A stretch of DNA of 64,000 bases, taken from sequence record PV593634.1; one strand, written 5' to 3'. Shown here one piece after another: positions 14,402-20,701 of this stretch. Numbering within the stretch: position 1 is the stretch's first letter; every line of letters starts with the position of its first letter. The position numbers were made by a program, and so were the translations under genes. Below the pieces are notes generated by a model. It was given only the letters and a program-made list of their open reading frames with translations. It made no database searches and was not told the origin of the DNA.

Positions 14402-15246
14402 TAGCGTTTCCTTGGAACGGTCATCTTGATAGAATCTGCTTTACCCTTAGGATCAGCATAAGCAAGATATTTCTTCATCTCGGTGTTAAACATATCTTTG
14501 AATTCACGGTGGGCATCCGCGTATCCTTGGATATCGTCTTGAACATCTTCAACCGTTACACCAAAGCGAGATACCGCTTCTTGCATACCACGTCTGCAAG
14601 TCTTATAGATATAAGCTTTAACACCTAACTCTACAAGCTCAGCAAACTTGTCATACATCTTGGGTGGGATTATGGAGAAGTGTTCGTCATAGGACAAAAC
14701 AACTTTAGCGATCATATTAAACATGGCTGAACCAGCATCACGAATAATGAAGGAGTTATTCCCCGTCATTGTGAAACTAGTAAATGAACGCTGTACCTGT
14801 CCATCATCTAAACCATTGATCAAGCGGTTCATACTACCGGTCATTGAACTACTGCCACAAGTTGCGTAGTTGTTGAAGTTGTAACCGTTGTTAATAGCCC
14901 GATTAATATTTCCAGGATAGACTTCTATTACCTGGATAATACGGCGACCGCCAGTCATAAAGTCTGGAACGTTAACTGCAATGATACCGCCTTGCAGGTT
15001 TTCAATATTGGCAGCGCTAAGATCAATAATCTCAGTTGTACCACCAGCGACGTTCAGCAAAGGCCCTACCATCTTCATGATGACCTTTTCACGAATACCT
15101 TGTTCAATTGTGAACTCATCATTCACAGGAGCCCAAATGGACCCATAGCCGTTATTTGGATTGTTAAAGGCTAACTTGAGTAAGTATTCCGAAATATCAG
15201 TAGGTCCGTTGATAACGTACTCAATTGAGAAATCAACTGGATTCAT
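14401..15246 (-). CDS. Conserved hypothetical, probably virion protein
   Basis: 281 aa, GAGG RBS, translationally coupled to the next gene. Confidence 0.6.
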   Translation of the reverse strand: MNPVDFSIEYVINGPTDISEYLLKLAFNNPNNGYGSIWAPVNDEFTIEQGIREKVIMKMVGPLLNVAGGTTEIIDLSAANIENLQGGIIAVNVPDFMTGGRRIIQVIEVYPGNINRAINNGYNFNNYATCGSSSMTGSMNRLINGLDDGQVQRSFTSFTMTGNNSFIIRDAGSAMFNMIAKVVLSYDEHFSIIPPKMYDKFAELVELGVKAYIYKTCRRGMQEAVSRFGVTVEDVQDDIQGYADAHREFKDMFNTEMKKYLAYADPKGKADSIKMTVPRKR

Positions 15247-15296
15247 AATAACCTCTTTTATAATGGAATTACAAAAGATCGAAGTACAGACATAAA

Positions 15297-15325
15297 CCCC
15301 TACCCCTCCGAAGAGAAGGTAGGGG
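15297..15325 (-). terminator. Intrinsic terminator
   Basis: CCCCTACC...GGTAGGGG; minus strand continues into TTTATG. Confidence 0.75.
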
Positions 15326-15333
15326 ATATGCTT

Positions 15334-15436
15334 GTCGGGTAAGGCAGGACGGTTTCAGGCATGAATGGCAGACACACCTGAATCCCCGTTTCGTCCATTT
15401 GTTTTAGTTCGCAGGACTCGTCAGCTGTTACGAACA
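15334..15436 (-). ncRNA. Type I hammerhead ribozyme
   Basis: Minus strand: CAG CUGACGA GUCC-17 nt loop-GGAC GAAA CGG-hairpin-CCG UC^ CUG. All core nucleotides and stems I-III are present. Confidence 0.88.
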
Positions 15437-16037
15437 CCTCTCTCTCACCAGGGTAGAGATTTGGTAGGTCCTCAGATATCGCATCGCTAATCACGTTAGC
15501 TAATAGGCATTTGGAGTATCAGGACTCCGCCTTGAGTTATGCTTTCGTTCTGAAGGACCAATGGATGTATCCTCACAACCTCAGACACTAGACTCGATTC
15601 ACGTAAGTGTTTAATTTTGGTCTCGGCCGTGTCGGTAGCAAGGATACTGAAGGGATGCAACGTTCCCAAGTAAGATAGATATTGTTTCGCTTCGGCCCAG
15701 GATGGAGTTCGGGTTCTACCATCATCGATAACCCGACGAGCGCCGTCGGAGAGTGCATTCAGCTTATGCTACTGGACATTCTATCAAACGCGTTGCTAAG
15801 CGCCAACGGATTCCGAAGGCACCATCCACCAGGGCTGTTTCGTACCTGACCCATGAGTCAGAATACCAGTCACCTGGATTTAGTTCCCTGGAAGCTGCGA
15901 TTCCTCCAGGGATTTAGCCCTCAACTTTACGCCGGTCTTCGCCAGCAGGCTGAGGGTCTTACGAACCCATTGTGTTGACTGGTGAATCCGAGTTAAGAGT
16001 CCTTAGTCGTTAAGACTTACTGCCCATTAACCCCGAC
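15334..16037 (-). ncRNA. Large structured non-coding RNA (about 700 nt), family not recognised
   Basis: No credible ORF; 5' and 3' ends complementary; many hairpins and long-range helices; G-U pairs favour the minus strand. Confidence 0.75.
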
Positions 16038-16064
16038 GCACACTTCCCAACAGTTTGGGTCTAA

Positions 16065-16460
16065 CTATGATCCGTAATCGAGTTTTACGAATCTACCTTT
16101 ATAGTAGCCAAAGTTTTCAGGCTTTGCATCGCTTCTATAAAAGTCAGGAGAGATTGTGGTTAAAGATGGTGACAACGCACAGAGTCTTTCTAGCTCAACG
16201 AAGTATAGTCCTCTGTTATTAACAGGGGCGCAACGTCTCATCACTATGAACAATCCAGTACGTGTTCCCATAACCGACGGACACAGATGTGAATCAGGTC
16301 TATCAGCTATTCCTCTCCATTTCCATTCAGTAATATTAGCTAGCAGTCCTTGTAGGAAATGTTCCCAACTGTAGAACGACGGTAGTTTAATAGCGTACCG
16401 TTTCGTCAATATCACTAACCTGGTGGCGCCTTTTCTGTTAACCTTGATATTGGGCAACAT
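16065..16460 (-). CDS. Minimal protein-kinase-like fold protein
   Basis: 131 aa; GATRLV, YAIK (VAIK-like), DAKPEN (DxKxxN), KLDYG (DFG-like). Confidence 0.65.
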   Translation of the reverse strand: MLPNIKVNRKGATRLVILTKRYAIKLPSFYSWEHFLQGLLANITEWKWRGIADRPDSHLCPSVMGTRTGLFIVMRRCAPVNNRGLYFVELERLCALSPSLTTISPDFYRSDAKPENFGYYKGRFVKLDYGS

Positions 16461-16680
16461 GAGGCATCAGTGCAGACCAACCGCCGACGTGTTTATCGTC
16501 AACAAAGATCTGTGGAACTTCGCGAACCATAGTGCCACAAATTTCACCGAGCTTAACAGCATCGATACCTTGCTCAACGATGTCGATGTATTCAACTTCG
16601 ATAGCAGGTTTTGTGGCACACAGGTTTTTAGCTTTAACACAGTTAGGGCAATTCGGTTTGCCGTAAATCGTTACTTTCAT
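16438..16680 (-). CDS. grx: Glutaredoxin
   Basis: 80 aa; CPNC, VPQIFVDDKHVGG. Confidence 0.9.
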   Translation of the reverse strand: MKVTIYGKPNCPNCVKAKNLCATKPAIEVEYIDIVEQGIDAVKLGEICGTMVREVPQIFVDDKHVGGWSALMPHVAQYQG

Positions 16681-16860
16681 TTCTTATACTCGCAGGTTTA
16701 TTAAATATGAATTCATATTACAGTGTAATCATCACTCGTCTTGGTTTCCGTTCAGAGTGTTTCATAGTTAGCCGTAACCTTATGATGAATCACTTAGGTT
16801 CTTATGGTTATGTCTTTCGACACCTTTACACTAACCAGTGATACTGGAATGAATAAAGTT

Positions 16861-16947
16861 TGGAGCCAAGTACTGGATTCGAACCAGTGATGTCCTTTCG
16901 GAAATGGATTTGCAATCCATCTGCTTCGACCGCTCACATAACTTGGC
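16861..16947 (-). tRNA. tRNA-Cys(GCA) with long variable arm
   Basis: Acceptor GCCAAGU/ACUUGGC, anticodon arm AUGGA-UUGCAAA-UCCAU, T arm ACUGG-UUCGAAU-CCAGU, U73, encoded CCA. Confidence 0.9.
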
Positions 16948-16951
16948 GTAA

Positions 16952-17057
16952 TCGTCTCGGCCTCAGGAGTTTAACCTGACTACTGTGAAATCGCCCAGTG
17001 GTAGAAACTAATCATCCACCATCACGACTTCACGACCTATCTACATAGATAACCGAA
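16952..17057 (-). ncRNA. tRNA-like element B
   Basis: UUCGGUU/GGCCGAG stem, UCAGG-UUAAACU-CCUGA T-like arm, 3' ACGA; interior is not a cloverleaf. Confidence 0.4.
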
Positions 17058-17060
17058 TTT

Positions 17061-17148
17061 GTTATCGGGAGCAAGATTCGAACCTGCATAGTCTTACGGA
17101 CGTATCCGCCGTCGAATTTCCTCACTAGGTTTAAAAGACTATCCCGAT
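17061..17148 (-). ncRNA. tRNA-like element A
   Basis: AUCGGGA/UCCCGAU stem, GCAGG-UUCGAAU-CUUGC T arm; D and anticodon arms replaced by a UAGUCUU/AAGACUA helix. Confidence 0.6.
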
Positions 17149-17154
17149 GTTTGT

Positions 17155-17544
17155 TTAATCAGACTGAACTTCTATAGGTTGAGCCTTTGTTCTAAGTCCG
17201 CTGGCTGTTGTTATCGAATCGTCTTGAACGAGACCGTTCTTAATGAACATAAGCTGTTTACCTATAGAAATTACTTCAGACCATCCAGCCACTTTAGCAA
17301 CCGATAGGATTTCATTGATGTGTTCTTTGGTGATTTGGCGCTTGGCCGAGATCTCCGATAAACCATTTCCAGCAAATGCATGGAGATTGGCTTTCTCAAT
17401 GAATTTATTAACTAGCTTTAACACATCACCGCTTGACATCAGGTAGATCGGATCGTTCTCGGTTCGATCTGCCGGATCCGGTAATAGCAGGACTTGGGCA
17501 TCTTGAATCTGAAGCGTTACATCTTTCATTTCTAACTTCCTCAT
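17155..17544 (-). CDS. Hypothetical protein
   Basis: 129 aa in the tRNA cluster. Confidence 0.6.
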   Translation of the reverse strand: MRKLEMKDVTLQIQDAQVLLLPDPADRTENDPIYLMSSGDVLKLVNKFIEKANLHAFAGNGLSEISAKRQITKEHINEILSVAKVAGWSEVISIGKQLMFIKNGLVQDDSITTASGLRTKAQPIEVQSD

Positions 17545-17604
17545 GGGTTGTTCGCTAAAAACCTTAAAATAGGTAAGCGAGGATCTTCATGACATTATGA
17601 AGTT

Positions 17605-17693
17605 TGGCAGAGAGTAAGGGATTCGAACCCTTGTGCCCCGAAGGACAACCTCCTTAGCAGGGAGGCGACTTAAACCAACTCATCCAACTCTCT
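17605..17693 (-). tRNA. tRNA-Ser(GCU)
   Basis: Anticodon arm CCUCC-CUGCUAA-GGAGG, long variable arm, G73, CCA. Confidence 0.95.
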
Positions 17694-17815
17694 AATAGGC
17701 TCTCTCTCCCTATTTAAGGGTCACCTACACCAACAGCGCCCGGTATTTAGCCGAGATGTAATTATGGGATTGGGATTTTCAAGCCCTCACCGGCGGTGAT
17801 TGTAGAGAGATAACG

Positions 17816-17891
17816 TGGCGCTTGTGACAGGACTCGAACCTGTGACATATGGATTAACAGTCCACCGTTCTACCGACTGAACTACACAAGC
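17816..17891 (-). tRNA. tRNA-Asn(GUU)
   Basis: 76-nt cloverleaf, anticodon arm GUGGA-CUGUUAA-UCCAU, CCA. Confidence 0.95.
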
Positions 17892-17898
17892 TTAATAC

Positions 17899-18402
17899 TT
17901 ACCGTAACACTGGGAATTGGTCTTTTACTTCTCTTATGAGTTTATTGACGTCAATTCCTTCGGGAGCGCTTAATACTATCCTGGTTCTCGCATGAACTAA
18001 TGTCTGACCTCTGTTTGCTTCAGTGCAGGCTGAAGTCAAAGTAAAGTCACCATTTGTATTAATGGTGAGCGAGCTACCGGACAGTGTTACATTCTTCTTA
18101 CCGTTGATTACGGTAATGGTTTCACCAGACTCATTAACGATGTAAGCTTCTTCATTACGATCGACGTATCGAGTACGTGGACCATCTTCACCGTTGGCTT
18201 TAGGGCAATCGATTAAGATCGCAGCTATTGGACCACTGTTAAGGATGTCAAGTGTATAAGCACCAGCGATTGGTTCTAAGGTCTCACGCTGTGAGATATA
18301 GACTGGCTGATGCTGTTGGAATATTTGATCTCCAATAGATGGAGTCGTTACCTGTTCCTGTAAAGGAATGTCGTACTTGGTGATCTTCTTAAGATATAAC
18401 AT
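17899..18402 (-). CDS. Hypothetical protein
   Basis: 167 aa, GAGG RBS. Confidence 0.65.
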   Translation of the reverse strand: MLYLKKITKYDIPLQEQVTTPSIGDQIFQQHQPVYISQRETLEPIAGAYTLDILNSGPIAAILIDCPKANGEDGPRTRYVDRNEEAYIVNESGETITVINGKKNVTLSGSSLTINTNGDFTLTSACTEANRGQTLVHARTRIVLSAPEGIDVNKLIREVKDQFPVLR

Positions 18403-18414
18403 TTTGTATTGCCT

Positions 18415-19080
18415 CGTAGTGATAGTGTTGGTGTGAGGTATTATAAAGTCTGCCCCTCACTAAGATTCCGCTTAGTGTTTAACCGGCTGGCCGCCGGGGT
18501 CATTTGTCTCACTAGAGTTACTTGGAAGCTATTACAACCAAGACTTATCATGGGGTCCTCGCACTCCCCACTCCCTTCTCACGTCTTGCCCTCGACCAAC
18601 GAGGTGGAATCGGTACCACCCTTCTTAAAGAACTATCTTAATAACTCTTTAAGAAAGAAGGTTTGATGCTCGTCCGATATCTAAATCAGCGCTGGTCCTT
18701 TCGGAGGGCGACGAGCTTCAAGGTTCTGCTTGCACTTCATAGTCACTTGGTGTCTACTTGTAACAATGTACTTAGATCCGCCTAACTAATGGTGCTTGAC
18801 ACTACAGCGATGTTAACGCTTTATATAAGCCGAAGTTAATCGGTGATTGTTGAGTATCGTGGAGGGACTCGGTTCCTAATTGTGGTCCTGCTTTGGATTC
18901 GCTCTTTGGGATCAGCTGGAACATGTAAATTTCCTAAGAGAGTCCGACTTCGCTGCAACGCGTCCCTCGGCGGGAGATTGTTTTCCCAACATGTCGGGGA
19001 TGGTAGTACATTGTCAATCCGCAGATTGCCAATCAGACATGTCGAGAAATTGGTGATGTTTAACAGAGTATGGAGGCTCG
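18415..19080 (-). ncRNA. Second large structured non-coding RNA (about 600-660 nt; ends approximate)
   Basis: No credible ORF; 11-bp long-range helix, GAAA tetraloop and at least eight local hairpins. Confidence 0.6.
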
Positions 19081-19084
19081 GTTA

Positions 19085-19360
19085 TTAAATTACTTCATAC
19101 CAATCTTTACCGAACAGATCGGAAATAGAAGGAACCCAGGTGTTGACACGTTCGCCATTCACGATTACCAGGAAACGTTCCAGATAAAGGCGATCAAGGC
19201 CAGAGTCTTCAGAAGGGTTAACACTCGATGCGATTACAGAACCGTGAACTTGTATATACAAGTTCTTACCGTTCCAACCAGCACGAGCATATTTCTTGCC
19301 AGCTTCCAATCCAACCAGTACGACTGAAAATGGAATCAGCTTTTGTTCTTGTTGTGACAT
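19085..19360 (-). CDS. DUF2829 / Tad2-like nucleotide-signal sponge
   Basis: 91 aa; ARAGWNGKNLYI and WVPSISDLFGKDW match the DUF2829 pattern. Confidence 0.75.
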   Translation of the reverse strand: MSQQEQKLIPFSVVLVGLEAGKKYARAGWNGKNLYIQVHGSVIASSVNPSEDSGLDRLYLERFLVIVNGERVNTWVPSISDLFGKDWYEVI

Positions 19361-19773
19361 ACTATATCCCTTTTGATATATACTTAATTAAAAATCTATA
19401 TTAAAAGAGCCAGGGACGTCATATCCCTGGTTGCTAATATAGCAGTAAGAATGCGTCATAAGTTTGTTGAGAAGATGGCTTTGCAGGAGACCACTTCCAT
19501 ATATCTATTCCGAAAAACAAACATATGGAAGTAGGGTCTAACGACCCTAGACAATCCCAAGAAGATTTCCTTACCTTCCCTATAAACACTAGACAATGCT
19601 TATAGGGAAAGCAAATGCGCACCAGGAAAAGTTGTGCGCACTCACCCAACCCACTAAGAAGATTCCAAGCCGCGGAGCACAGGACCCTTCTTTATGAACA
19701 CTCAGGAAGAACTCATAAAGAAAGGTGGGAAGTGGCAGTCTTCCCAACCTTGATACATATAAGGAGGTTTTTT

Positions 19774-19890
19774 ATGAACAATGGCAACAGTTTAAATAGC
19801 AATACCTATCAACCGATGACGAAACACGATGGCAGACGAGTTTCTGTAAATACACTCTTTGGAATGCGCTTAAAGAAACGAAGACATTAA
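19774..19890 (+). CDS. Small basic protein (38 aa)
   Basis: AAGGAGG six bases upstream of ATG; MNNGNSLNSNTYQPMTKHDGRRVSVNTLFGMRLKKRRH. Confidence 0.5.
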   Translation: MNNGNSLNSNTYQPMTKHDGRRVSVNTLFGMRLKKRRH

Positions 19891-20028
19891 TTTCACATAA
19901 TATCTTCGACCAGTGTAATTAATCACTGTAAAGGTTTGAGTATATGAGCAATGCAATTTGAACAAGATGATTTGAGCAGGTGATCATTTCGTTACATAAT
20001 ATATACCAGTTCCATTAATTAATAAACC

Positions 20029-20045
20029 GATATTATCTACGTGTA
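20029..20045 (+). promoter_or_regulatory. Phage promoter-like motif
   Basis: GATATTATCTACGTGTA, identical to 31032-31048, at the head of the accessory gene run. Confidence 0.7.
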
Positions 20046-20086
20046 AGCAATTCGACTTATTTAAATTAACTTTAGAGGTTACTAGA

Positions 20087-20701
20087 ATGCAAACCATTAA
20101 TCAGACTCAAGTAGAATCAATCCGCACAATTATCAGCGGGCAGTTGCGTGAGAAGTTCAGTCTGGACCAAATCGTCATTACCAAGGTAGATGATGATCTT
20201 CTCTATCAAGGTCATGAATTCGAATCAGATGTATACGCTCTGGAATTCATTATCAATGGCCAAAACCGCTACACAACCTTCTTCGGCTACCGGAATGGTA
20301 AGATCGGGTTCACTCGTTGTAAAGAAGGCATTCTGCGTCGTCTGGCTGGTTTGATCCGTCCGCACGATTTCGGACTGGGAGCAACTGATGACTATTATCG
20401 TCGTGATGATGTCATTGGTAAATTCCTGGAGTATGTAATAAACCAGAAAGTAGAGATGGAGATCCAAGATAAATTGGATAACCTCTACAAAGGTACGATT
20501 CGTTGTTCTGATTACACATTCGGCTACTATGTAACTCGTCGTCACAAAACAACCATGAGTTATGATGCCGATGTAGAGATCCTGGTTCGTGGTGAATCGG
20601 ATCCAACCTATCGTCGTTATGAAGCAAACGTCATTAACGGCCGTATGGTTAGTCTTCGCAATTCCGACGGAGTGGAAGTTCCACTGAAGTCATTGTTCTA
20701 A
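20087..20701 (+). CDS. Hypothetical early protein
   Basis: 204 aa, GAGG RBS. Confidence 0.75.
   Translation: MQTINQTQVESIRTIISGQLREKFSLDQIVITKVDDDLLYQGHEFESDVYALEFIINGQNRYTTFFGYRNGKIGFTRCKEGILRRLAGLIRPHDFGLGATDDYYRRDDVIGKFLEYVINQKVEMEIQDKLDNLYKGTIRCSDYTFGYYVTRRHKTTMSYDADVEILVRGESDPTYRRYEANVINGRMVSLRNSDGVEVPLKSLF

Follow-up and report, generated by a model that had tools for sequence, protein, structure and literature searches.

The DNA considered here is a 64,000-nucleotide (nt) window, nt 1-64000 of the genome of Shewanella phage SXP01 (PV593634.1, 269,939 base pairs (bp)), and the subject of this study is an island at positions 15297-19890 of that window, in which a few protein genes are interspersed with transfer RNAs (tRNAs) and with a series of larger structured RNAs. 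Coding sequence accounts for 1786 of the 4594 nt, which leaves 61% of the island non-coding, and every island element lies on the minus strand, at or close to where a first-pass annotation had placed it; the claim made there, that over half of the region is non-coding and nearly all of it on one strand, is thus borne out. The public record shows 2 genes and 0 RNAs between 15.3 and 19.9 kilobases (kb), namely a 'putative virion structural protein' that is actually a glutaredoxin (16438-16680) and a 'hypothetical' protein that is Tad2-like; missing from it are three tRNAs, the open reading frames (ORFs) here called ORF167 and ORF129, and a kinase-like ORF. The entire 270-kb record holds 193 features only. 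On comparative evidence, the island's elements are conserved, strand-specific, structured RNAs, and the largest of them, RNA 1, is by its conserved predicted fold a new, ~710-nt class of large ornate phage RNA whose 3' end is probably made by self-cleavage through a built-in hammerhead ribozyme. The parts of RNA 1 and its surroundings are these:

15348-16063, minus strand: RNA 1, an ornate structured RNA of ~710 nt, running from the conserved GUUGGGAAGUGU to the predicted hammerhead cleavage site
15334-15438, minus strand: predicted type I hammerhead, with CUGACGA at 15424-15418, GAAA at 15392-15389 and the predicted cut after GUC, between 15348 and 15347
15435-15431 pairing with 15411-15407, minus strand: predicted hammerhead pseudoknot, joining loop II to the 5' flank of stem I
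15292-15347, minus strand: 3' trailer freed by the predicted hammerhead cut, consisting of 22 nt, the terminator hairpin 15325-15297 and a U tract

Homologues of RNA 1, present in at least 13 other phages or contigs, begin at a conserved GUYGGGAAGUGU some 10 nt past the preceding gene and can all be aligned over their full length of 680-790 nt. In SXP01 the RNA folds 6.4 standard deviations better than its shuffles (z = -6.4), and RNAalifold, applied to an alignment of eight sequences (alignment A6), returns 116 pairs in 22 helices, 52 of them with compensatory changes. In controls, 92.6% of the alignment cells were paired compared to ~40% with slid partners, and the 52 compensatory pairs compare with 12-20 for slid partners and 23 in shuffles, it being understood that the structure was derived from the same alignment. 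The strand is fixed by the many conserved G-U pairs, which would be C-A on the opposite strand, and a conserved ORF is found on neither strand of RNA 1. Its central domain of ~170 nt (about 15800-15640) is 83-100% identical across phages of Shewanella, Klebsiella, Serratia, Pantoea, Kosakonia and Edwardsiella. The GC content is 50-53% across RNA 1 vs ~42% in the flanks. A function as host mimic or antisense RNA was considered and set aside, given that blastn returned no match on either strand in all complete Escherichia coli genomes or in the plasmids of PLSDB. A metagenome scan with the invariant 17-mer gave 28 loci, 27 of which are chance matches and one of which (L039) is a true homologue.

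The hammerhead that the first-pass annotation had seen at the end of RNA 1 is well supported by an invariant core and covarying stems. In the alignment of eight homologues the core is complete (CUGA-N-GA, stem II as GUCY...RGAC, GAA, A15.1-C-G-G...C-C-G-U16.1, with C17 as the cleavage site), and the elements CUGA(N)GA, GAAA, ACGG/CCGU and GUC are invariant in 14 of 14 sequences. Stem I opens to the flanks and the ribozyme is therefore of type I. This stem is 3-4 bp long and each of its pairs covaries (CAG/CUG, CUAU/AUAG, CACC/GGUG, ACAU/AUGU), while the five nt immediately 5' of it pair with the start of a 17-21-nt loop II in the combinations GUUCG/CGAAC, UGUCG/CGACA, CAUCG/CGAUG, CGUCG/CGACG and ACUCG/CGAGU. 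Across the eight sequences the four helices are 96.5% paired, with compensatory change in 8 of 18 pairs; across the 14 sequences they are 96% paired, and no shuffle reached either this percentage or the covariation score. Compensatory changes in the larger set fall on all four pairs of stem I, on two of five in stem II and on three of five in the pseudoknot. The four pairs of proximal stem III never vary and are uninformative, and distal stem III covaries by eye as well as in RNAalifold. The 5-bp pseudoknot is 98.6% paired in the 14 sequences, with four pair types at two of its positions, and it formed no part of the search model: the covariance model (R1), built from the eight homologues without the pseudoknot, matches copies on which it was not trained at 55-78 bits, in phage AH04, in the contig L050 and in four uncultivated virus genomes (UViGs) of jumbo phages. 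A second hammerhead copy was not found in the window by the covariance model. A second hammerhead or another ribozyme at the 5' end of RNA 1, as circularisation would use, was sought with model R1 and Rfam and not found.

As a ribozyme, the element is a new member of a known and well-described class. It contains every core position of the RF00163 hammerheads (C3 U4 G5 A6 N7 G8 A9, G12 A13 A14, A15.1-U16.1, C17), and it shares with known type I hammerheads the three stems around the core, the open stem I, the pseudoknot as tertiary clamp and the intergenic site in a phage genome. A pseudoknot between stems I and II occurs in ~40% of hammerheads and is needed for fast cleavage (Perreault et al. 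2011, PMC3088659). The same work established that hammerheads of every type can be stabilised by a pseudoknot and that hammerheads occur in phage intergenic regions, and it also discussed hammerheads that process polycistronic phage transcripts. Unlike the known examples, the SXP01-type ribozyme has a loop II of 17-21 nt whose pairing partner is the strand flanking a very short stem I on its 5' side, bears on stem III a ~45-nt hairpin with a conserved CUCCAG loop, and is fused to the 3' end of a structured RNA of ~600 nt. The theta ribozymes (PMC10879173) likewise are self-cleaving ribozymes within a phage tRNA region that produce an RNA end; they are, however, related to the ribozyme of hepatitis delta virus (HDV-like) and abut tRNAs, whereas the ribozyme of SXP01 is a hammerhead and finishes a large non-tRNA RNA. 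In Salmonella phage SA002 (L008:5709-5788) a candidate hammerhead has a GUA cleavage site and a stem III insertion of ~90 nt, scoring 20.5 bits with model R1; the same phage has a copy of RNA 2c (see below).

Beyond the predicted cut, the trailer sequence CCCCUAC...GGGGUAGGGGUUUAUG is kept in all relatives, as is the terminator hairpin 15325-15297, which is followed by UUUAU and agrees with the terminator named in the first-pass annotation. In N1M2, Yubaba, Kc263, OBP, AH04, L039 and UViGs, an extra conserved module of ~270 nt lies between cleavage site and terminator, and the ribozyme would thus separate two RNAs in those phages; SXP01, Survivor and pEt-SU lack this module. Its sequence reads GUGCCUUAACCGUGAGC ... 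CAAACGGUCCGC ... GAAGUUGUUGACAUCAA-GUAGACAGCC, and it is located at L002:5200-5480, L003:5442-5722, L005:5535-5845, L007:6248-6512 and L048:5736-5929 as well as in L058, L064 and L072.

Searches with Rfam (Rfam 15), which covered the window and nine related loci and used both gathering and E-value cut-offs, recovered only tRNAs and chance matches. The models of GOLLD (RF01998) and ROOL (RF03087) gave no match at E <= 10 over 15000-20200, and none at E <= 1 or <= 0.1 in the nine related loci. GOLLD and ROOL are large phage-associated RNAs found beside tRNAs (PMC5737381). RNA 1 resembles them in its size range of 600-800 nt, in its many junctions (22 helices), in being phage-borne and in lying near tRNA genes; they are encoded by phages or prophages, are probably co-transcribed with tRNAs and have no known function, and RNA 1 is alike by context. 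The hosts differ, RNA 1 belonging to jumbo phages of Gammaproteobacteria whereas GOLLD and ROOL come from Firmicutes, rumen and lake sources, and unlike either of them RNA 1 has a built-in predicted self-cleaving 3' end and a central domain that is interchangeable between phages. The first-pass annotation did not recognise the island as a described system, and no literature description of these RNAs was found, a 2025 review of nucleus-forming phages that mentions no non-coding RNAs included. RNA 1, the modules 2a and 2c of RNA 2 and both tRNA mimics are accordingly, as far as sequence models reach, unrecorded RNAs that match nothing in Rfam 15.

The tRNAs and the two tRNA-shaped RNAs form a second group of elements:

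17816-17891, minus strand: tRNA-Asn(GUU), CCA encoded (ARAGORN and Rfam, 75.9 bits)
17605-17693, minus strand: tRNA-Ser(GCU), CCA encoded (ARAGORN and Rfam)
16861-16947, minus strand: tRNA-Cys(GCA), with long variable arm, U73 and encoded CCA (ARAGORN and Rfam)
17063-17148, minus strand: tRNA-like 1, with 7-bp acceptor stem, canonical T arm (GGUUCGAAUC), long composite arm and 4-nt loop, no CCA
16948-17062, minus strand: tRNA-like 2, a four-arm cloverleaf with T arm loop UUAAACU and 18-bp 'anticodon' arm

All five had been named by the first-pass annotation, and all are present on the minus strand by ARAGORN and Rfam or by their folds. The variable loop is short in ordinary tRNA-Cys; that of SXP01 has a class-II-like arm of 12-13 nt, with long-arm homologues in AH04 and L050 (L048:3006-3091; L050:5647-5733). 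A blastn search with the long-arm tRNA-Cys also matches the 'tRNA-Cys' of Xanthomonas phage XacN1 and of Vibrio phages. In a UViG relative (L058:800-879), ARAGORN calls a tRNA-Cys with the odd anticodon ACA that may be another tRNA-like element.

The fold of tRNA-like 1 combines the acceptor stem AUCGGGA/UCCCGAU and the T arm GCAGG-UUCGAAU-CUUGC with a 23-nt 'D' insertion and a 4-nt loop at the place of the anticodon loop; the Rfam tRNA score of this RNA, 28.3 bits, lies below the gathering score of 29, its fold has z = -2.6, and unannotated copies, 86-93% identical, exist in N1M2, Moabite, 2050HW, Kodama, Totoro, ParM-25 and L058. The fold of tRNA-like 2 (z = -3.1; compensatory change in 19 of 36 pairs across six phages) comprises a 7-bp acceptor stem, a 5-bp T arm and an 'anticodon' arm of 18 bp, the 30-nt tip of which is invariant; no Rfam tRNA match was obtained for it. 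Neither RNA has a 7-nt anticodon loop, tRNA-like 2 having at that place an invariant end of 6-9 nt, and neither is called by ARAGORN; CCA is encoded in the true tRNAs and not in the SXP01 mimics. The tRNA cluster of phage T4 yields two stable RNAs, species 1 and 2 (rnaC/rnaD), of unknown function and matured by host tRNA-processing enzymes. Compared in features, not in sequence, those RNAs and the tRNA-like RNAs of SXP01 are alike as small RNAs with tRNA-like character among phage tRNA genes; unlike the T4 species, those of SXP01 are conserved across many chimalliviruses, and one of them has a long invariant arm that replaces the anticodon arm.

The remaining non-coding elements of the island and its upstream flank are as follows:

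18830-19084, minus strand: RNA 2a, starting with UAUACUCUGUUAA, with a conserved hairpin loop GAUUACAUGUUCCAGC and ending in CACAAUYUGG
18658-18829, minus strand: RNA 2b, spacer or divergent module, part of the RNA 2 fold of z = -4.2
18440-18657, minus strand: RNA 2c, a motif of ~170 nt with two T-arm-like hairpins and the invariant GUAACUCU..GAGAC..GUUAAAC..GCGGAAUC
19400-19908, minus strand: RNA 3, a conserved hairpin array ending in a terminator-like hairpin (19430-19410) and a U tract
17694-17815, minus strand: spacer between tRNA-Asn and tRNA-Ser ('multi-hairpin element'), z = -1.3, not significant
16704-16862, minus strand: conserved module of ~160 nt ('structured leader' before the glutaredoxin gene), z = -0.7, no thermodynamic signal
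19992-20003, minus strand: promoter-like TATATTATGTAA motif, an invariant block in 6 phages, upstream of the island

Of the two large non-coding RNAs that had been proposed, RNA 1 is upheld (z = -6.4), and RNA 2, though it folds as a whole at z = -4.2 compared to shuffles, is a composite of at least three modules that differ in phylogenetic distribution. RNA 2a starts directly past the Tad2-like stop codon and is present in SXP01, L050, N1M2, Yubaba, Kc263, OBP and AH04, with a covarying hairpin stem (CACUAG/CUAGUG, CACUGG/CCAGUG, UCUCUU/AAGAGA); for RNA 2b, nhmmer found no match in any related locus. RNA 2c occurs in nine distinct phages, among them the 75-kb Pseudomonas phages Holyagarpour and Ebordelon and the Klebsiella FBKp24 group, shows compensatory change in 26 of its 39 pairs across the nine, and lies directly 5' of a tRNA in OBP, SA002, L013 and L017. 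In otherwise unrelated phages it sits inside unannotated gaps of ~700 nt (L009:2534-3224 in Holyagarpour; L010:2653-3401 in FBKp24, where the gap comes after an array of eight tRNAs), and these gaps may contain further unrecorded RNAs. RNA 3, which takes up the ~500 nt ahead of the Tad2-like gene (19908-19400), is an additional conserved hairpin array that the first-pass annotation had not named; RNAalifold gives it 110 pairs, 40 of them compensatory, and its three terminator-like hairpins include a final one 40 nt upstream of the Tad2-like start codon. Its homologues are in N1M2, Yubaba, Kc263, OBP, L050 and L065. The 'multi-hairpin element' and the 'structured leader' show no thermodynamic signal as structures, yet both have sequence homologues in other phages: the former is partly conserved in Yubaba and has a homologue in Klebsiella phage KpYy, and the latter is 84% identical in L050, where it is placed elsewhere, before tRNA-like 2. 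Base-pairing between the modules of the island gave no signal (7 perfect complementary 10-mers vs 11 in shuffles).

The TATATTATGTAA block could serve a phage RNA polymerase as promoter, a role suggested by its conservation and by its position in AH04, where the same motif (GTATATTATGTAA, corresponding to 20003-19992 of the window) directly precedes RNA 1 (L048:4895-4907). A second TATATTATGTAA copy lies at 19893-19904, within a conserved hairpin. As a recurrent promoter the motif was rejected, there being 9 window matches at up to 2 mismatches compared to 9.2 expected. A scan for sigma-70 promoters was not above chance, the promoters of phage RNA polymerases being outside what can be scanned.

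The proteins encoded in the island are these:

19085-19360, minus strand: Tad2-like (DUF2829) gene, 91 amino acids (aa) (PF11195, E = 7.1e-15, 55.7 bits vs a cut-off of 25)
17899-18402, minus strand: ORF167, 167 aa, no assignable family, no Pfam match, weak tblastn matches only in pEt-SU and Survivor
17155-17544, minus strand: ORF129, 129 aa, no assignable family, no Pfam match, found in SXP01 only, no tblastn match in any related locus
16438-16680, minus strand: glutaredoxin, 80 aa (PF00462, E = 1.5e-10)
16065-16460, minus strand: kinase-like protein, 131 aa (phrog_4301, E = 1e-33), with G-loop, YAIK lysine, D-A-K-P-E-N and DYG

The Tad2-like gene and the glutaredoxin gene, both as first annotated (PF11195, PF00462), recur in every related locus that extends far enough upstream, the former always in the same position, and by this conservation they are the only constant protein passengers of the island. 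By its domain match the Tad2-like protein is putatively of the anti-Thoeris type, the domain saying nothing about the ligand. The 'signalling-counter genes' of the first-pass annotation reduce to this single Tad2-like domain, a search of the surroundings of the island having turned up no further domain linked to anti-defence.

The proposed 'mini-kinase' looks like a kinase N-lobe plus catalytic loop minus the C-lobe, according to its model: the catalytic motifs are present, the kinase fold is matched at modest Foldseek scores only, and a C-lobe is absent. The AlphaFold2 prediction (predicted local distance difference test, pLDDT, of 84) has an N-lobe beta-sheet and alphaC helix, and the best Foldseek matches listed are all kinases or APH-type phosphotransferases (Cph001, Lpg2603, APH(2''), MPS1, Rio2, PknE), at E = 3e-4 to 1e-2 and template modelling (TM) scores of 0.44-0.58, with coverage only from the N-lobe through DFG. 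Sequence searches gave no Pfam match and, among chains of the Protein Data Bank, a chance match to MurB only. Family members of 120-131 aa all have G-x-T-R, YA(I/F)K and a terminal DYG; K25 and D128-Y-G are invariant in 7 of 7 homologues, the D-A-K-P-E-N loop is present in 5 of 7, and all homologues end 1-3 residues past DYG, without a complete C-lobe. The protein thus shares with protein-kinase-like enzymes (eukaryotic-like Ser/Thr kinases, APH, Rio) the YAIK lysine, D-x-K-P-E-N and DYG (DFG-like), but unlike full kinases it has neither activation segment nor helical C-lobe, and from its sequence kinase activity is doubtful unless a partner is present. Among the related phages it is confined to SXP01 and L050. 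It also occurs in one unrelated phage lineage (L051 and L052, metagenome contigs of 179 kb and 83 kb) with no RNA 1 nearby and with a gene for PTS_2-RNA, a Tpt1/KptA-like RNA 2'-phosphotransferase, ~5 kb downstream.

The gene order around the island is shared by Klebsiella phage N1M2, Serratia phages Yubaba and Sureiya, Pantoea phage Survivor, Kosakonia phage Kc263, Edwardsiella phage pEt-SU, Pseudomonas phage OBP and Erwinia phage AH04, as well as by L050 (a 267-kb contig in a Salmonella assembly) and several UViGs of jumbo phages. It comprises a divergent 204-aa gene, a gap of ~0.7 kb, the Tad2-like gene, a gap, tRNAs, the glutaredoxin gene, a gap of 0.75-1.1 kb, a DUF7484 virion gene, thymidylate kinase and terminase; tRNAs are 0-1 kb from RNA 1 in all loci. 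Petsuvirus, the genus of pEt-SU in which the records also place OBP and Yubaba, is classified in Chimalliviridae, so that the family assignment made in the first-pass annotation is reasonable; Nimduovirus, Branisovskavirus and Meadowvirus have no family in these records and are joined by synteny. The co-occurrence that had been anticipated for Chimalliviridae is seen as synteny of the elements across a subclade. Across the island, the closest relative of SXP01 is L050 (GCA_007314255.1, AAHPQS010000007.1, 267,347 bp, in an assembly of Salmonella enterica serovar Saintpaul), with 75-89% DNA identity and a kinase-like protein that is 84% identical.

Considered together, the locus is on balance best explained as a modular island of tRNAs and non-coding RNAs, characteristic of a subclade of nucleus-forming jumbo phages and processed into stable RNAs that act in trans. 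We also think it reasonably probable that the island is a cluster of modular RNA genes, each able to fold independently, with a divergent promoter region on one side of the cluster and the late structural genes on the other. Transcription would run rightward-to-leftward, possibly giving a single long RNA from the Tad2-like gene on. With respect to intergenic terminator-like sites, none was found on the minus strand between 19400 and 15325, the single match being a weak hairpin inside ORF167, a result that leaves room for one long transcript reaching from the Tad2-like gene as far as RNA 1. Ribonuclease (RNase) P and the 3' tRNA-processing enzymes recognise acceptor/T-arm helices; the host RNase P, together with enzymes of the RNase E/Z type, should for that reason cut at the three tRNAs and at both tRNA-shaped RNAs. 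The RNA 1 copies of N1M2 and Yubaba start immediately next to a tRNA-Met, so that tRNA processing would set their 5' ends. At the other end, hammerhead cleavage after C15348 would remove the terminator and, in other phages, the second RNA module. Hammerheads leave a 2',3'-cyclic phosphate on the upstream RNA and a 5'-OH on the downstream RNA; RNA 1 would thus retain the cyclic phosphate, expected to resist 3' exonucleases and poly(A) tagging, and the trailer the 5'-OH, the short stem I favouring departure of the 3' product. The mature RNAs would then work as stable trans-acting RNAs. For RNA 1 our best guess, and the weakest step of the scheme, is by analogy a structural or scaffold RNA of the GOLLD/ROOL kind that is linked to the tRNA and translation agenda of the phage.

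Several observations weigh against this interpretation or against parts of it. The terminator at 19430-19400 separates RNA 3 from the Tad2-like gene, and the position of the AH04 motif suggests that RNA 1 can be its own transcription unit; together these two findings indicate that there are perhaps several transcription units. The variation of the modules in order and presence among the phages likewise does not favour a single precursor. The central domain of RNA 1 is swapped for unrelated hairpins in OBP and AH04, which makes RNA 1 itself modular and could mean that it has more than one function, and the lack of any match to GOLLD or ROOL in sequence or structure leaves context as the ground for the functional analogy. 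Regarding the ribozyme, the Rfam model Hammerhead_1 (RF00163) is matched at 16.5 bits compared to a gathering score of 34 (E = 5.4), a sub-threshold score explained by the 17-nt loop II and the elaboration of stem III by ~45 nt; stem I measures only 3-4 bp; and the class is well described, pseudoknotted phage intergenic hammerheads being known (PMC3088659). The idea that adjacent small proteins are partners of the RNAs is weakened for the kinase-like ORF, ORF167 and ORF129, none of which is co-conserved with the RNAs; the restricted occurrence of all three makes them poor candidates for obligate partners.

Cis-acting untranslated regions (UTRs), as opposed to free RNAs, are a rather unlikely explanation of the same elements. 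RNA 3 would then be an attenuator or leader of the Tad2-like gene, as its three terminator-like hairpins, the last 40 nt before the start codon, could suggest, and RNA 1 a long structured 3' UTR or insulator, in keeping with the fact that its immediate downstream neighbour is in every case the DUF7484 structural gene. The part of the hammerhead would be to cut early/middle read-through transcripts off from the late genes for structural proteins, beginning with DUF7484, as has been proposed for other hammerheads in phage operons, and processing of polycistronic phage transcripts by hammerheads is discussed in PMC3088659. An insulator, however, needs the ribozyme and terminator only, and not a body of ~600 nt in which 22 helices covary and a core of 170 nt is nearly invariant. 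Changing module positions among phages fit free-standing genes better than UTRs, and RNA 2c is found in unrelated phages in different gene contexts.

A role of the island in evading host defence is distinctly unlikely, although it draws on the Tad2-like (anti-Thoeris-type) gene as the constant neighbour of the RNAs. Phage tRNAs can counter anticodon nucleases, and the mimics, which keep acceptor stem and T arm without an anticodon loop, could together with the extra tRNAs absorb or replace the targets of host tRNA-cleaving nucleases, while RNA 1 or other modules would soak up a host protein or a signal used in defence. Yet a decoy of anticodon nucleases would be expected to retain the anticodon loop, no defence-related domain but the Tad2-like one was found around the island, and no sequence similarity to host RNA was seen on either strand in E. 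coli genomes and plasmids. That the elements are evolutionary debris, that is degenerate tRNA genes, pseudogenes and scars left by mobile elements, kept only through linkage, is highly improbable. The patchy and shuffled distribution of modules between phages and the absence of a structural signal in RNA 2b, in the Asn-Ser spacer and in the 'leader' would suit such an origin; compensatory substitutions across dozens of helices would not, nor would blocks that keep 85-100% identity where the proteins of the same phages share no more than 45-65%, nor a ribozyme core that is intact in 14 of 14 copies.

The processed island of trans-acting RNAs, as preferred here, has importance beyond the single locus. 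Ornate conserved RNAs of more than 500 nt in bacteria and their phages are, to our knowledge, very few (ribosomal RNA, group II introns, GOLLD, ROOL, OLE and HEARO), and each of the large ornate RNAs has proved, or promises, unusual biochemistry. To these the locus contributes a large RNA class with an integrated, predicted self-cleaving 3' end, along with at least four unrecorded motifs (RNA 2a, RNA 2c, tRNA-like 1 and tRNA-like 2); its novelty relative to the large ornate phage RNAs and to the stable RNAs of phage tRNA clusters lies in the integrated ribozyme and in the density of modules. Nucleus-forming jumbo phages are intensely studied, and yet all these RNAs have gone unrecorded in one locus; public annotations of these phage genomes miss even the tRNAs. 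The predicted cleavage site, the exact module boundaries and the relatives that can be grown on Serratia, Klebsiella aerogenes and Pseudomonas fluorescens provide testable objects. It is a bolder and quite unlikely proposition that RNA 1 represents a new functional class on a par with GOLLD and ROOL, as a self-assembling RNA particle or as a large ribozyme or riboregulator used with the phage tRNAs and their mimics. If that were true, RNA 1 might serve to protect, deliver or re-tool components of translation, or to blunt RNA- or nucleotide-based host defence, and the cyclic-phosphate end made by the hammerhead would be needed for its function. The island would then constitute a phage 'RNA toolkit', the modules of which are exchanged between phage lineages.

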